This document shows, piece by piece, positions 1 to 7,055 of a stretch of 16,073 bases of DNA. Where the stretch lies: positions 1-16,073 of the forward strand of contig CDMY01000839.1 of assembly GCA_001179505.1 (NCBI GenBank), read 5' to 3'. Origin of the DNA: Vitrella brassicaformis CCMP3155 (lineage: Eukaryota > Protista > Chromerida). Position numbers and translations under genes: made by a program. Under the pieces are notes generated by a model. That model did not search any database. It was given only the letters and a program-made list of their open reading frames with translations, and was not told the origin of the DNA. Numbering within the stretch: the stretch's first letter is position 1; each line of letters begins with the position of its first letter.

Positions 1-673
1 TGATATATACACCCACTCCAATTCATGATATATACACCCACTCCAAGTCCAAACATGTATGCGCAGGTGCGCGCATAGAGACGTTCATCATACACACACA
101 CTCCAAGGCAACGCGTGCATGCGCAGGTGTGCGCACACAGACATTCAACACATACACTCCAAGTCCGAACGTTCATGCGCAGGTGTGCGTACAGAGACGT
201 TCATCATACGCGCACACTCCAAGTCGACGCGTGCATGCGCAGGTGTGCGTAGAGAGACATTCATCATCTACGTAAACACTCCAAGTCCAAACGTTCATGC
301 GCAGGTGTGCGCATAGAGACATTCATGATATATACACACTCCAAGTCGACGCGTGCATGCGCAGGTGTGCGCACAGAGACATTCATCATATGCGCACACT
401 TCAAGTCAATGCGTGCATGCGCAGGTGTGCGCACAGAGACCTCCAAGTCGACGCGTGCATGCGCAGGTGTGCGCACAGAAATATTCATGATATATACACC
501 CACTCTGCATGCGCAGGTGTGTGCACAGAGATATTCATAATATATACACACTCCAAGTCGACGCGTGCATGCGCAGGTGTGCGCAGAGAGATATATATCA
601 GAGACATTCATGATTTATACATGATTTATACACCCACTCCAATTCATGATATATACACCCACTCCAAGTCCAA
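1..673 (+). repeat. ~60-bp minisatellite tandem array, about 10 units; runs off the left edge of the window
   Basis: The core GCGCAGG recurs at 61, 121, 177, 237, 299, 359, 419, 461, 511 and 571. Approximate consensus: ACACTCCAAGTC(CAAACGTT/GACGCGTG)CATGCGCAGGTGTGCGCACAGAGACATTCATGATATAT. Bases 1-52 match 622-673 at 51/52 positions. Confidence 0.97.
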
Positions 674-2080: not shown

Positions 2081-2296
2081 ATCTGCCTTGCTAGCTTTCG
2101 TGTCAGCATCTTTCATTCGTTCGTGTGCGTGTAGATTTGGGATATCGTGTGAGGCCGTAAGCCGTCCGCCCTTCACGTGAACCGCCGCCGCATCTGCCTT
2201 GCTAGCTTCGTTCGTGCCGACATCTTTCGTTTGTGTGCGTGTGGACTTGGGACATCGTGTGAGGCCGTAAGGCCGTCCGCTCTTCACGTGAACCGC
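2081..2296 (+). repeat. Two-copy tandem duplication, period ~111 bp, immediately upstream of the gasdermin-like gene
   Basis: ATCTGCCTTGCTAGCTT starts at 2081 and at 2192. Both copies continue with ...ATCGTGTGAGGCCGTAAG(G)CCGTCCGC.CTTCACGTGAACCGC. Confidence 0.93.
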
Positions 2297-2361
2297 TCCC
2301 CCCGGACTTGACTAGATCTGAAGGCTGTCAGCCACCTACTCTGTACCCTGAGACGAGCTCC

Positions 2362-4022
2362 ATGTCGTTAGGGAGCGAGTTCAACGAGGTACTTCACAGG
2401 CAGCTCGGGATTTATGCAGCATGGCCTCCTGTTGTGGGCGGCGTCAATGAGTTCGAGGTGGGAGACTACGGTGTCATCCGAGGGGGCGTCTTCAGCTTCA
2501 TGGGAAATCTCTCGAGGGACTTCCCCGGGATTCCCGAGATTGAAGTCCGGGAACTCGCGAGGGACTTTCCCGAGACTGAAGCCCAGAGCCATCGAGGACG
2601 CCGCCGTCGCCGCCGGCATGGTGGAAGAAGTCGCGCTGATGAGCCCGCTCCCACCTACGACAGCCACCCTCCCATCTACGACATCCAGTCGGGCAGAGTC
2701 AGGGTCGTTAGGGGTTCCGGTGGTTTGGCATTCGGATGGCTCCCGTTTGGCAAAGTGGATGCCAGTGTCACGTTCCGCTTCCTCCGTGACAAGACCGCCT
2801 GGTTGAAGGGACCCGTCCAGAAGTCTCACCAGATGGTCAACATCCTTGCGGCAGCAGACCACCTTCGCCAGAACCCTCTGTGGAGGGAGTACTACAAGGT
2901 GGTGTCGAGAGTCTTCATCGGTCGGCATTGCCTATTTGTGGCCGCGCACAAGAAGGGCACCAGCCTGGTGTTCAAGGGCGGAGCCAATTTATTCCACCAA
3001 GTCGAGTTCCCATGGGAAGCCAAGGTGGCGCTTCATGGGGAGTTCCACAACTATGAGGGAGACGTCTTCCAGAGCATCGGGGAAGAAGGCGTGGTGGGCC
3101 TCGGCCTCTTCAGCGTGAGCGACTACTTCCCAGAGCTCTACTCTCAGACGCCTCCTCAGACGCCGCCGCGCAAGGGGTCCAGCTGGAGCCGCAGGACGAG
3201 ACCTAAGGCGGTAGAGAGACCCCACCTACACCACGCCAGCCTGCAGCCCTTGCAGGCCCCGCCTGCACTACCGCCGCCGTCCTCAGCAGAGGTGGCTGTC
3301 GCCAGGCTCACAGGGGGTGTGAGGCAGGAGCTGGAGGCGACGCCTGAAGTCCCTGAACGGGTAACCACCGACAAGCCCACGACTGCCCACGCAGGAGAGG
3401 TAGAGGGACCCCACGTGCCGTTGCCTCCCAGCGGCGGTTCAATCCTCATCAAGACCCTCACCGGTGAGTCAGTCAGCGAGTGGGACACAACTTGGGCAGG
3501 GAAACCACTCGCTCCACAGGGATCACCGCTGATTCCTCGACCCATCGTGTCTGGCTTTTGCTATGTGATTGCTTTGTATGTGCAGGCAAGACCATCACGG
3601 TGGACACAGTAAAGCCTTCTGACACCGTCGAGGACCTCAACGCGAAGATCAGAGACCAGTTCCCCTTCCCTCCTCAGCAGCAGCGCTTGGTCTTCGCCGA
3701 CCATGAGCTCGAAGACCGGCGCACCCTGGCGTACTACGATGTGTACCAGGGGGCCGCAATCTATCTGATTCTCTGTCTGCGGGCCGGCGGCTCTGAATCA
3801 AATCAGCCTCTCGTGTCTCATCCGGTCGACGGGACAGACGAGGAAGGGCGGTCAATCGTATTTTTGCTGCACACCGACTGGGGAGACAAGCTCACAGACC
3901 ACGACATCGAAGGTAGCGCCCCTCCCCCCTTGGCGCCAGCGGCGACAGCAGAGGCCGACACGAGCCAGCCATACTTGCAGGCCCCACTCCCAGAACGACG
4001 GCTGCCGAGGGCTTCTCAGTAG
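2362..4022 (+). CDS. Two-exon gene (2362-3463, 3586-4022; 512 aa): putative gasdermin-like N-terminal domain, Pro-rich linker, ubiquitin-like domain, C-terminal tail
   Basis: ATG at 2362. Intron 3464-3585 (GTGAGT...TGTGCAG, phase 1) joins ILIKTLT-G-KTITVDTVKPSDTVEDLNAKIRDQFPFPPQQQRLVFADHELEDRRTLAYYDVYQGAAIYLILCLRAGG, a clear ubiquitin-like domain. The N-terminal ~260 aa (F..L..Q.G.YAAWPP...VGDYGVI.GGVF..MGNL...VTFRF...W..YYKVVSRV...GVVGLGLFSV) resemble gasdermin-like proteins by eye. Confidence is high for the gene model and Ubl, moderate for the gasdermin call. Confidence 0.75.
3464..3585 (+). other. Spliceosomal intron (122 nt) inside the Ubl domain
   Basis: GTGAGT donor and TGTGCAG acceptor. 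Removing it restores the ubiquitin-like TLTGKTIT. Confidence 0.92.
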
Positions 4023-4289
4023 AGGAGGGTGTCGCGAAGCCCACAGGGGATATGGGCGAGGCCCGTTCCGCGGTCTAGGTCAATGGCTGACTTGCCAATG
4101 CTTAACGAGACGCTAGCACAATCAGGAAAGGGCTCTCCAAGACCGAAGGTAGAAGAAAGCGGGGCCAGTTCACTGGTGCCTGGATGATGAGCAAATCCAA
4201 TAGAGAGTTATCTTGTGTGTTTTTGACTGAAATCACAGGGCGACGTCACAACGATCGTCAAATGTCTCACACAGTAGCTAGTACAGAGT

Positions 4290-7055
4290 TATCTGTTCTT
4301 TTTAGGTAGATACATGAACAGGCGACGAAGTTCGTCTAAGCATCAGTCCGTATCAAGCAAGCAAAGGGGAACAAGACATGCAAAGCCAATGAACAACGCT
4401 CATTGACTGCGAACAAATACATGTCGCACACTGCAAACAAGCGTGAGACATGCATCACGATACACACATTCACAGAATCCAGATCCAGCCAGCCACCTCA
4501 CAGCCCCGGAGCGGGGCTGGTGTGTGGCCTATATGGCTCGCGGCTGACGAAGTCCTCGGGAAACGCGCTGGCCCTCCGTGGCCCTCTGGCGGCCGCCGCG
4601 CGTTGTGCACGACTCGCCACTTGAAATGCGTTGTGCTTCATCAGCTCGACGGAGAGAAGCTGGCTTCAATGGTTGATGATGCTTTCTCGGAAAGCTGTGT
4701 CCTCCTCCGTGGGAATGGACGTGGGGCGGGGCTTCCGCTTGGCGAGCATCTTGAGAAAATCCATCGTCTTCTCTCCCCACCTGCCGAATGTCTCCGCAGC
4801 AAGAGGCACAAAGCGGAAGCCGGCAGCTCGAGCGGTTGGCCCATACTTGTCGATCTTGTCCTTCTCCGCAAGCTGCGCCGTCTTGCCACCAGGAAGTTGT
4901 GCACTGCGCCGGTTGACTGTCCGGTGGAAGGGGATGGGGGAGTTATCAGGCCGGCAGGGATGAGCGATGGTGACGTCGAGCAGGTAATCACTACCGTCGA
5001 TCACACAGTAGATGTCCATGCGCTGGTTGTTGGCGTTGTCGTCGGGTGGGGTGATACCGAGGCTGTGCAGAGGCACCTCCACATTGGAAGGAACATCTGC
5101 CTCAGCCACGAGCGAACAAACAAGTTGCGCATGTTGTTGTGTCTCGTCACCCGCTCACGGCCGGTGTGGCATATGTAGAAGTGATCGCCAAACTTGTCAA
5201 CCTCCCCATCGCAGATGCATCGCTGCGGGACGGTTGTGCGCGGGAGGCTGATGCCGAGACACCCGGCGACGGCATGACGATACTGGAAGTTGTTCAGTGC
5301 CTTGCTATCGCTGGAAGGGATCGCTGACAGCCAACCAGACGAGAGAGGCCCTTGGCAGCTCAGGAGACGGGCTCGGGCCCTGCCGTCGGGCGGGACAGAG
5401 TTGAAGAGCTCGTTGAAGCGGAACTTGTGCAGTTGATCGGTCAGGCGCTGCTTCAGGCGGACCTGTGGCCTCGAGACAAGGTCCTGGAGGGAGGGGAGGG
5501 AGAAGGAGGGGCCAACCACCTCAGAGACGGCAGTCAGGGCAGGGACTGCTGCTTGAAGCCAGGGCAGATCCAACAGAGCAGCGAGCCCTCCGTAAGGCAT
5601 CCATGGCGCTCCACGAAAACGGGCGAAGACATCAGAGGCCGTCACTCCGATCGAGCTGAGAAAGGCCGCGCGAGCAATCGTGGTTCTAGAGATGAGGCCG
5701 AAACCCCCTAGCCGAATGGGAAGCTGAACTTGTGCGGAGACCGAGTCCGTGAAGTCGCCAGGAAAGCGGAACATGCGCCTGAATGCCGTAATAATAGCGG
5801 CGTCATGTCGCTCGGCGGCTGCCAGGGAGACGTCGGGGTCCGGGGGGAGGAGGCGCAGCCAATACTCCAACCGGGGGGATGCACAATAGCGCAGAAGGAG
5901 GCCAGAACCCTGCAGGCCCATCTGAGCGAAGGTCACGATTGCCTCGAGCAGCGGCTGATGGTCGGTGGTGATCTTCTCGAGGCTGCTCTGGACAAAAGAC
6001 GCGCCGCCGAGCGGGCAACCGAGGACGGTGATGCCTTCAATGGAGCACTTGACGCCAGAGATGGCGATGTCTGCCGGAATGTCAGAGTCTTGTTGCCAGC
6101 GGGGGCTCTATGCTGCGCTCTTGTCTCTCCGCAGCCTCAGCTTCTTCTCGGCCAAAAGCTGCTCTGCTCTGTCAACATACCGCATAACACGCGTCTCGTC
6201 CAATCCACCGTCGATGTCGTCCATGAACGCACCAACGAAGTCATCGGGGAATTCCTCTTGCAGCTTGACAAGGGCTGGCTGAAGGCCCAGGCAGAAGAGG
6301 AAAGGGCCCGCCGCGTCGCCTTGCTGGGTGCCCTCCTGACTGAGGATGGTCTCCATGCGTCCGTCCTCCATGCGATACCACAGCTCAGCCGGAGTGCCGT
6401 AGAACTACCAGAAAAAGTCGACAAGGGACGGCCACTTTGTGCCGAGCTCGTTGAGGATCGCCTGGCGGTCGATGCTCTTGAAGGCATTCTTGCAATCCAA
6501 AGTCACCAAAACACGCTTATCGGAATTGTAGTGGCGTGTCTCCATGAGGGTCTGATAGGCCCGAAAGAGCTTTTCTCCACCTGCCGACGTACCGACCGCG
6601 AACTGCAGGGGTGAAAAGTCTTCCTCGAAGGCAAGTTTGCTCTCCATACAGACCGCCTTCGTCACCCATCTCCGAAGCACATCACCCACAGCAATCGGCC
6701 GGACCCCTCCGTTGTCTTTCATCAGAGCAAAAAGGCGGGCGACCAAAAGAGTTTTAGTGCAGGTATCCGGCATATTTCCAGCGAGCATCCGATTGACAAG
6801 GGAGGGCAGGGGGACGGTCTGGTCTTGCGCCGTCGCATCACCCTCCCCCATGCAAGCACGAAGATGCTCGTACCGCCAGCCCGTAGGGCCAGCTGCGGAT
6901 CCTCGTGGCGCCGTCTTGAGGGCAGCCAACAAAACCCTGGGCGGGACCGAGAGAGGCGTGGGGGGTCCATCTGGGCTGTGCTGGGGCTGCGGTTTGGTAG
7001 GCGACGGGGCAGCAGGGTGTAGGTCCTTGAGCTGCTGGAGTGTCGCAGCCGTCGC
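4290..7055 (-). mobile_element. Degenerate, 5'-truncated CRE-like non-LTR retrotransposon (RT + Zn knuckle + RLE); boundaries approximate
   Basis: One reading frame runs from ~7055 to ~5113: TLQQLKDLHP, PRGSAAGPTGWRYEHL, GGVRPIAVGDVLRR, LQFAVG, LDCKNAF, GTQQGDAAGPFLF, AFMDDI, GITVLGCPLG, QLPIRLGGFGL, SGWLSAIP, CICDGEVDKFGDHFYIC, RHN. After a 1-nt frameshift near 5113 come RMDI...LLDVTIAHP, AEKDKIDKY, FVPLAAETFGRWG and LSVELMKHNA. In-frame stops lie at 6405-6407 (TAG), 6108-6110 (TAG) and 4666-4668 (TGA). The probable true stop is 4498-4500. Confidence 0.93.

Follow-up and report, generated by a model that had tools for sequence, protein, structure and literature searches.

A putative bacterial-type gasdermin of the chromerid Vitrella brassicaformis with a ubiquitin-derived domain ahead of its candidate inhibitory tail

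The window analyzed in this work is an entire contig of Vitrella brassicaformis CCMP3155 (16,073 bp; contig C839), and the gene of interest spans positions 2362-4022 of its forward strand; it encodes a putative gasdermin, in which a predicted pore-forming domain is followed by a ubiquitin-derived domain and then by a conserved tail. The open reading frame (ORF), 512 amino acids (aa) long and free of stops, joins exon 1 (2362-3463) to exon 2 (3586-4022, with the stop codon at 4020-4022), and its product is identical to the annotated V. brassicaformis CCMP3155 protein P0001, named 'Ubiquitin-like domain-containing protein'. The first ATG of the transcript is at 2362, and none occurs between 2251 and 2362. 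The parts of the gene are listed below, with Ubl denoting the ubiquitin-like domain and pLDDT the predicted local distance difference test score of the AlphaFold2 models:

2251..2361, + strand: 5' untranslated region; the transcript contigs L007 and L008 begin at 2251, and the longer L005 begins at 1957
2362..3123, + strand: gasdermin-like pore-forming domain, aa 1-254 (AlphaFold2, VIA-align, Foldseek, family profile against 7n50)
2545..2673, + strand: Arg-rich insertion specific to this lineage, aa ~62-104, containing RGRRRRRRHGGRSR and placed in a loop of the gasdermin domain (alignment, low pLDDT)
3124..3438, + strand: Pro-rich linker, predicted to be disordered, aa 255-359 (pLDDT <50 for aa 275-359; no relatives align)
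3439..3463, + strand: first strand of the Ubl, aa 360-367 and the first base of Gly368, at the end of exon 1 (Pfam PF00240; aligns with ubiquitin residues 2-9)
3464..3585, + strand: intron of 122 nt, GT..AG (GTGAGT...CAG), phase 1, within the Ubl after TLT-G (skipped in transcript contigs)
3586..3791, + strand: remainder of the Ubl, aa 368-436, ending LRAGG, with Gly435-Gly436 at nt 3786-3791 (E 6e-21 to PDB ubiquitin chains)
3813..3911, + strand: conserved tail, aa 444-476, two strands plus DWGDKLTDHDIE, the candidate autoinhibitory C-terminal peptide (MAFFT, pLDDT, structural alignments)
3912..4022, + strand: Pro/Ala-rich disordered C-terminus, aa 477-512, plus the stop codon (low pLDDT; translation)
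4023..4199 at least, + strand: 3' untranslated region, with one contig extending to 4273 (transcript contig ends)

Regarding its expression, the gene is transcribed and the splice is real, because transcript contigs skip the 122-nt intron. Four of them, from the JGI transcriptome and two Logan runs, align at 100% across the 3464/3585 junction and carry the uninterrupted 512-aa frame; when the contigs of four runs were mapped with 1,951 letters of the window, the GT..AG skip was found in three, and the fourth gave an unspliced genomic contig. The initial annotation had described this spliced ORF without stops and had proposed to look for its junction in transcripts; translation, the annotated protein and the transcript contigs bear out the former, and the intron is missing from the contigs of three runs. 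Bacterial contamination was also considered, and it was ruled out by the spliceosomal intron, the location in the Vitrella assembly and the presence in Vitrella transcriptomes. At the 5' end, two transcript contigs begin exactly at 2251, which is also the start of a 46-base segment (2251-2296) shared by several much deeper contigs that then diverge (loose ends at 2296/2297); this segment may be repetitive, or it may be a 5' stretch that several transcripts have in common.

As for the N-terminal domain, it is very probably a gasdermin, both in fold and by homology, because the structural model, the fold searches, the profile links and the CHAT or caspase context of its relatives all point that way. 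The AlphaFold2 model, built with the family alignment, had a pLDDT of 84.5 and a predicted template-modelling score of 0.79. In an all-against-all comparison with 48,161 PDB chains, VIA-align placed gasdermins exclusively at ranks 1-14 (Z 9.9-5.6), and these spanned bacterial, Neurospora RCD-1, Trichoplax, and mammalian A3, B, D and E gasdermins; the ranks that follow are cholesterol-dependent cytolysin (CDC)/MACPF toxins, known distant kin of gasdermins. The first ten rows of a Foldseek search against the PDB were also all gasdermins, with weak E-values, from 3e-3, and the full-length model matched 8sl0 with Z 9.7 and a root-mean-square deviation of 3.7 Å over 157 aligned residues. At the sequence level, the family profile had its best PDB match, in register, with 7n50, the Bradyrhizobium gasdermin (E 0.014), and the PADLOC profile for bacterial gasdermins (bGSDM) was matched by one of 67 family members, at 8e-5. 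The neighbours of the domain in the ESM Atlas include Bact_GSDM and Gasdermin clusters, and the nearest clusters by features are fungal proteins of ~250 aa. Direct searches with the domain against Pfam (E up to 10), PADLOC and PDB sequences yielded nothing useful; a whole-genome search of Vitrella with PF04598 was blank, and one with the PADLOC bGSDM profile was blank too, a result that is uninformative because the control genomes were also blank. A gasdermin-like N-terminal domain had been suspected from the sequence layout, with structure prediction and fold comparison as the check, and this suspicion is supported: the predicted gasdermin fold was recovered, the top matches in the two PDB fold searches were gasdermins only (bacterial, RCD-1 and animal), and the bacterial relatives lie in CHAT operons.

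One region of the domain sets P0001 apart: the 43-residue Arg-rich insertion (RGRRRRRRHGGRSR) is missing from all 66 aligned relatives and has a pLDDT of 50-60; it could be a polybasic membrane-binding stretch, a nuclear-targeting stretch or a dibasic processing site.

The relatives themselves were found by an exhaustive HMMER search of 1.84 billion representatives, which gave 107 proteins, 50 of them with E <= 1e-10 and nearly all 235-265 aa long; the first protein homology search had retrieved P0001 itself and one weak match, so that the family surfaced only in the exhaustive one. They are mostly bacterial proteins of ~240 aa, with taxa known for the 20 named genomes. The invariant columns of the family are W21, P23, G34, G48 and G243, and the nearly invariant ones D35, G37, G42, W174 and G240; P0001 retains all the invariant residues. 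The motifs singled out beforehand (AAWPP, GDYG, GVF..GN, W174 and GVVGLGLF) turned out to be invariant or near-invariant columns across this family of about 100 proteins, far beyond chance.

The genome context of the relatives adds a second line of evidence. In each of the four metagenomic contexts opened, a CHAT or caspase (Peptidase_C14) gene adjoins the gasdermin-like gene, and one of them also has an S8 subtilisin. A locus search in named bacterial genomes, run with a 12-row alignment, found 20 loci, 19 of them informative (one was too short), in Algoriphagus, Arenibacter, Nitrospira, Nitrosospira, Paractinoplanes, Saprospiraceae and Acidobacteriaceae, among others; a CHAT homologue directly adjoins the gasdermin-like gene in 16 of the 19, and all but one of these start just downstream on the same strand. 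An adjacent CHAT or caspase-like protease gene of this kind has been published as the hallmark of gasdermin systems in bacteria and fungi (10.1101/2021.06.07.447441; PMC8851545). Some prokaryotic, metagenomic members of the family are fused to other modules, namely an N-terminal ParA/MinD-like ATPase in P0035, a C-terminal peptidoglycan-binding domain in P0074 and a weak TIR match in P0079, and these fusions are typical of defence-island proteins. In a quick tree, unrooted and poorly resolved, P0001 pairs with a relative from assembly GCA_029979955.1 (approximate likelihood-ratio test 99), nested among rows of bacterial context, and the paralogue P0025 sits on a long branch; no conclusion on gene transfer is drawn from it.

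Downstream of the pore domain and the linker, residues 360-436 are a ubiquitin-derived domain, as judged from their sequence. The Pfam ubiquitin model PF00240 matches aa 361-430 with 60.1 bits (cut-off 25.4; E 1.7e-16), and the Ubl is 51-56% identical to the ubiquitin repeats of the Vitrella genome itself. The hydrophobic patch of ubiquitin is retained (L8, I44 as V, V70 as I), K48 is replaced by H and K63 by Q; in the alignment, G76 falls on G435, G75 corresponds to A and R72 to C, so that the domain ends in C-L-R-A-G-G instead of the R-L-R-G-G of ubiquitin, with 76 more residues downstream of the Gly-Gly. This Gly-Gly is kept in all three Vitrella copies of the Ubl. Confidence in the full-length AlphaFold2 model is low for the linker and even for the Ubl, because the alignment is shallow in that part. 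The initial annotation had claimed the fusion of a pore domain with a ubiquitin-like domain; that claim is borne out, with the fusion both spliced and transcribed.

Beyond the Ubl, P0001 carries a further conserved segment. An acidic peptide with the consensus eveieDdWGddLeDDl (family motif DWGxxLxDD) closes the sequence of all the ~240-aa relatives, and when full-length P0001 was aligned with them by MAFFT, their C-terminal peptides fell on aa 457-476, across a gap of 190 residues; this is part of the conserved tail (aa 444-476, ...GRSIVFLLHTDWGDKLTDHDIE), which lies within the 76 residues downstream of the Gly-Gly. A hidden Markov model (HMM) of the peptide, built from the relatives only, without Vitrella, was searched against 2,554 ORFs, and it ranked first the tail of the Vitrella paralogue P0025 (E 0.0025) and second that of a protein from another eukaryote, described below (contig L020; E 0.08). 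The P0001 tail is 53% identical to that of the paralogue C761 (E 2.6e-6). In the full-length model, residues 441-470 form two strands and reach pLDDT values of 84, 90 and 95, with flanks below 50, and alignments of the model with structures of inactive bacterial gasdermins start in the N-domain and reach model residues 466-473: residues 9..473 align with 5..262 of the 7n52 chain, and 6..470 with 7..259 of 7n51, the far aligned end being the C-terminal peptide in both structures. A complex prediction of aa 1-265 with aa 436-495 gave a weak pass, with a score of 0.38 against 0.13 for the best of three controls; the mark of this test is reached by 51 of 78 solved complexes and by 2 of 108 mismatched pairs, and its runs agreed in at least 39% of contacts, with a partner pLDDT of at least 48.

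In bacterial gasdermins, the C-terminal peptide braces the beta-sheet core, and a cut in the ~12-residue loop that precedes it activates the pore (10.1101/2021.06.07.447441). For P0001, the simplest reading of alignment and model is that Vitrella kept this peptide and that the linker and the Ubl were inserted into the activation loop; they would be an insertion, and not themselves the inhibitory element, because the conserved peptide of the family persists downstream of the Ubl and models against the pore domain. The earlier proposal that linker plus Ubl form the inhibitory C-terminal element is, on the same grounds, not supported.

Besides the window copy, three further Vitrella loci carry members of this family, and only the window copy is both intact and supported by transcripts. 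C745 (L017:7111-9449) lies downstream of polyketide-synthase modules; it has a gasdermin domain, the same phase-1 intron, identical in position and nearly identical in its 5' sequence (GTGAGTCAGT...) to that of the window gene, and a Ubl ending RLRGG-G. Past the conserved acceptor its Ubl continues in another frame; in place of the tail comes a second gasdermin start (GSQMKLARCLN), and the same open frame goes on into a GH2 sugar-binding domain. C745 looks rearranged or pseudogenised. C761 (L019:5306-7275) retains just the final third of the gasdermin domain; its intron position is the same, again with a near-identical 5' intron sequence, its Ubl ends in ARGGGG, and a Macro domain (PF01661, E 2e-21) comes after a well-conserved tail (RTDWGDELPDDVEED). 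Finally, C740 (L018:5792-7372), which encodes P0025, has a gasdermin domain, a strongly hydrophobic transmembrane-like segment and the conserved tail (MDWGDELSDDMTE); its gene model bridges an assembly gap (a run of N) and contains no Ubl, and one could be hidden in the gap. Since the paralogues share both the fusion and the intron, the fusion arose once and was then duplicated. The survey of paralogues that had been suggested at the outset thus found the Ubl followed by differing modules, GH2 in C745 and the tail with a Macro domain in C761.

The closest relative outside Vitrella, with 45% identity, belongs to another eukaryote (assembly GCA_029979955.1, contig JARPNH010007142.1, L020). Its gasdermin-like gene (3580-4542, +) has a model that stops just past the pore domain, without a tail, and it lies head-to-head with an ORF for a class-3 lipase (3214-1610, -); it is this lipase ORF that is followed by two Ubl units and a homologous tail, ...IEFEVHKDWGHEVADDF-stop (...KDWGHEVADDF). 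The 3' regions of the two genes share a 141-nt inverted repeat (669-809 and 4633-4773); a second GCA_029979955.1 contig proved to be collinear genomic DNA that adds nothing on the 3' end of the gasdermin-like gene. The Ubl-tail cassette was either taken over by the lipase from the gasdermin gene beside it or is portable as a module.

As for the rest of the window, ten ORFs flanking the gene were compared with Pfam and gave no significant match and one sub-threshold match; no neighbouring protease or deubiquitinase was identified among them. The damage that had been ascribed to the neighbouring coding segments is not confirmed, as this Pfam result shows neither damage nor integrity. The start of the contig holds a minisatellite (30-440 and 620-667) with a 60/122-nt unit, ~7 copies and 80-85% matches, plus a short 25-nt repeat.

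Among the known systems, P0001 shares its predicted fold with the bacterial gasdermins (Runella, Bradyrhizobium, Vitiosangium); its ~240-aa relatives have the short C-terminal peptide and the adjacent CHAT or caspase gene, and the predicted logic, in which a peptide braces the core and a cut in the preceding loop activates it, is common to both (10.1101/2021.06.07.447441). It differs from them in that it has no PADLOC bGSDM match and is encoded by a eukaryotic, intron-containing gene, in that its loop is expanded from ~12 to ~190 residues and holds the Ubl, and in that no CHAT was found in the Vitrella genome. Another difference concerns the N-terminus: a palmitoylated N-terminal cysteine (C3/C4) is common, if not universal, in bGSDMs (10.1101/2021.06.07.447441), whereas P0001 has no Cys near its own (MSLGSEF; family consensus MGL...). 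The fungal HET-Q1 and RCD-1 are likewise eukaryotic microbial gasdermins of bacterial type, and RCD-1 structures are among the top fold matches of P0001; HET-Q1 is cut by the HET-Q2 subtilisin or by CHAT proteases, and it sheds a C-terminal fragment of ~5 kDa on activation (PMC8851545). The fungal genes are clustered with their own protease, whereas no protease neighbour is seen among the flanking ORFs of P0001, and the papers that could be searched report no ubiquitin-like insertion in a fungal gasdermin.

With the animal gasdermins GSDMA-E, P0001 shares the N-terminal pore-forming fold (Z 6-8 to GSDMA3, B, D and E) and autoinhibition relieved by cleavage of an interdomain linker, the latter as a prediction; their large helical C-terminal domain (PF17708) is absent from it, and it has no PF04598 match. 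In animals, ubiquitin acts on gasdermins in trans (e.g., IpaH7.8), and not as a built-in domain. Linear ubiquitin fusions (polyubiquitin, Ub-eL40, Ub-eS31) offer another likeness, as they too have a ubiquitin fold that ends in Gly-Gly and is followed by a further segment of the same polypeptide; their junctions are cut by deubiquitinases, and, by analogy, the ubiquitin insertions of pestiviruses create a new cleavage site in the polyprotein. Unlike these, the Ubl of P0001 is internal and diverged (~52% identity, R72C, G75A, no K48 or K63), with a one-residue insertion and an intron of its own, and its cleavage is only proposed. Overall, P0001 would resemble a bacterial gasdermin, or a fungal one of the HET-Q1 type, in its modelled fold and logic, the chief difference being the ubiquitin-derived domain in the activation loop. 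Literature searches on gasdermins, with incomplete coverage, found no gasdermin-Ubl fusion, nor a gasdermin from chromerids, dinoflagellates or other alveolates, which amounts to no more than absence of evidence; neither protists nor ubiquitin come up in a 2024 review of microbial gasdermins.

These data can be assembled into a mechanism. Insertion of the linker and the Ubl into what is a short protease-cleavage loop in bacterial gasdermins would have moved the tail peptide ~190 residues downstream; the tail would fold back on the pore domain and hold it inactive, and any cut between aa 255 and 443 would free the pore domain, which would then oligomerise in the membrane. The favoured cut would be after the Gly-Gly of the Ubl (aa 435/436), by a ubiquitin-type hydrolase that replaces the CHAT protease; it is favoured because it would account for the position of a Ubl with Gly-Gly right in the interval between pore domain and inhibitory peptide, and for the survival of the Gly-Gly in three diverged copies. 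An exon-by-exon search of the Vitrella genome found no CHAT domain, a result that does not prove its absence, and the insertion would provide two new kinds of cleavable element, a disordered linker of 100 residues and a ubiquitin fold that ends in Gly-Gly.

Gene structure, transcription, the fold prediction, the family membership of the domain, the Ubl and the conservation of tail and Gly-Gly are established here, whereas the mechanism is inferred, and its parts are not equally secure. Autoinhibition of the pore domain by the tail is fairly probable, and activation by proteolysis is also probable, if a shade less so; a bacterial-type gasdermin with a tail latch and a Ubl inserted in its activation loop is, taken as a whole, the best explanation, with a slightly better than even chance of being right. 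Cleavage specifically at the Gly-Gly is a tentative proposal, more doubtful than the rest, and control by the ubiquitin machinery, which the arrangement may suggest, is likewise a proposal. As to the enzyme, the C-L-R-A-G-G end argues against indiscriminate cutting by housekeeping deubiquitinases, and a dedicated or induced enzyme fits better, because indiscriminate cutting would be lethal and the end of the Ubl is altered.

However, it should be noted that several points weigh against this explanation. P0001 matches no curated gasdermin profile (PF04598, PADLOC bGSDM; the bacterial Pfam model PF26164 was outside the set), and its membership in the family rests on predicted structure, a marginal profile match and the gene context of its relatives. 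Its tail came third in the peptide HMM search of the 2,554 ORFs with an E of 4.5, which is not significant by itself. The pLDDT of the tail, its alignment and the structural overlap share one family signal and are not independent; the complex test is the sole orthogonal one, and it is weak, as complex scores at 0.60 or under make up only 5 of the passes among the 78 solved complexes, but all 4 passing mismatches (of 180). A Ubl that ends in C-L-R-A-G-G instead of R-L-R-G-G may escape general deubiquitinases, and constitutive cutting by a deubiquitinase would leave the protein permanently armed. Finally, the Ubl-plus-tail of L020 follows a class-3 lipase, so the tail may act other than as a cis-inhibitor of gasdermins.

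Among the rivals, the one that survives best, though unlikely, has a conventional protease (a metacaspase, a subtilisin or another) activate the gasdermin by cutting the Pro-rich linker; the Ubl would then provide spacing, offer a handle on which a ubiquitin-binding regulator docks, or be left over from exon shuffling that involved a ubiquitin gene. The predicted disorder of aa 275-359 would make the linker accessible, in the bacterial and fungal relatives CHAT or S8 proteases cleave the loop that precedes the C-terminal peptide (10.1101/2021.06.07.447441; PMC8851545), and the paralogue P0025 has a tail without a Ubl in its gene model, albeit one that spans an assembly gap. A passenger Ubl is harder to reconcile with a hydrophobic patch and a Gly-Gly kept in three diverged copies with a shared intron, which suggests retention for a reason, and the failure to find a CHAT in the Vitrella genome also counts against it.

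A more specific form of the Gly-Gly proposal, in which the Ubl-Gly-Gly is a tripwire, has a still smaller chance of being correct. A ubiquitin-type or Ubl-specific protease would cut after Gly436, remove the tail and arm the pore; it could be the alga's own, induced by stress, or a deubiquitinase brought by a virus or a bacterium, and the gasdermin would then sense deubiquitinase activity in a manner analogous to the sensing of pathogen proteases by NLRP1/CARD8. Ubl-plus-tail would, in that case, be a portable latch, also for the class-3 lipase of L020 and the macrodomain of C761.

The involvement of the proteasome is a decidedly improbable alternative: the Ubl would dock on proteasome receptors, the disordered C-terminus or the linker would be the initiation site, and either the protein would be kept scarce or the Ubl and the tail would be removed and the stable, beta-rich pore domain released, comparable to the functional degradation of NLRP1/CARD8 or the processing of p105 to p50. 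A Ubl with an intact L8/V44/I70-type patch and without K48/K63 does resemble the integral UBL domains that bind the proteasome, and disordered segments flank it; yet integral UBL domains usually lose the Gly-Gly, which is kept here.

There is only a slim chance that the Ubl-Gly-Gly is a ubiquitin spacer processed constitutively, that is, a generic co-translational cleavage module, like those of polyubiquitin and of ubiquitin fused to ribosomal proteins, that separates gasdermin-Ubl from a downstream tail, macrodomain or glycosidase; as a corollary, the freed Gly-Gly might allow conjugation of gasdermin-Ubl to targets. The differing modules after the Ubl in the paralogues (tail and Macro in C761, a second gasdermin start and GH2 in C745) and the perfect RLRGG-G of C745 agree with it, but both loci are rearranged (C745 loses the frame past the splice site, and the first two thirds of the gasdermin domain are missing from C761), so their downstream modules may be accidents, and constitutive removal of the inhibitory peptide should be lethal unless the peptide stays bound. 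Equally slim is the chance of a gasdermin fold without regulated pore formation, with another role or as a decaying, horizontally acquired gene that is merely transcribed: the broken sister copies in the genome and the unusual 43-residue Arg-rich loop insertion speak for it, but P0001 has an intact 512-aa frame with all family-invariant residues and is spliced and present in several transcriptomes.

In conclusion, to our knowledge gasdermins have been described in animals, fungi and bacteria, and all the well-studied ones are activated through a protease, heterotypic assembly or redox chemistry. The Vitrella gene would extend the family to alveolates, relatives of the apicomplexan parasites, with a bacterial-type gasdermin rebuilt with a part found only in eukaryotes, ubiquitin, exactly at the site of the activating cut, and it would offer a testable link between ubiquitin-type processing and a cell-death pore. 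If true, the attachment of a portable Ubl-plus-tail cassette to various effectors would suggest that such a regulatory module is in wider use in protist immunity or programmed cell death.

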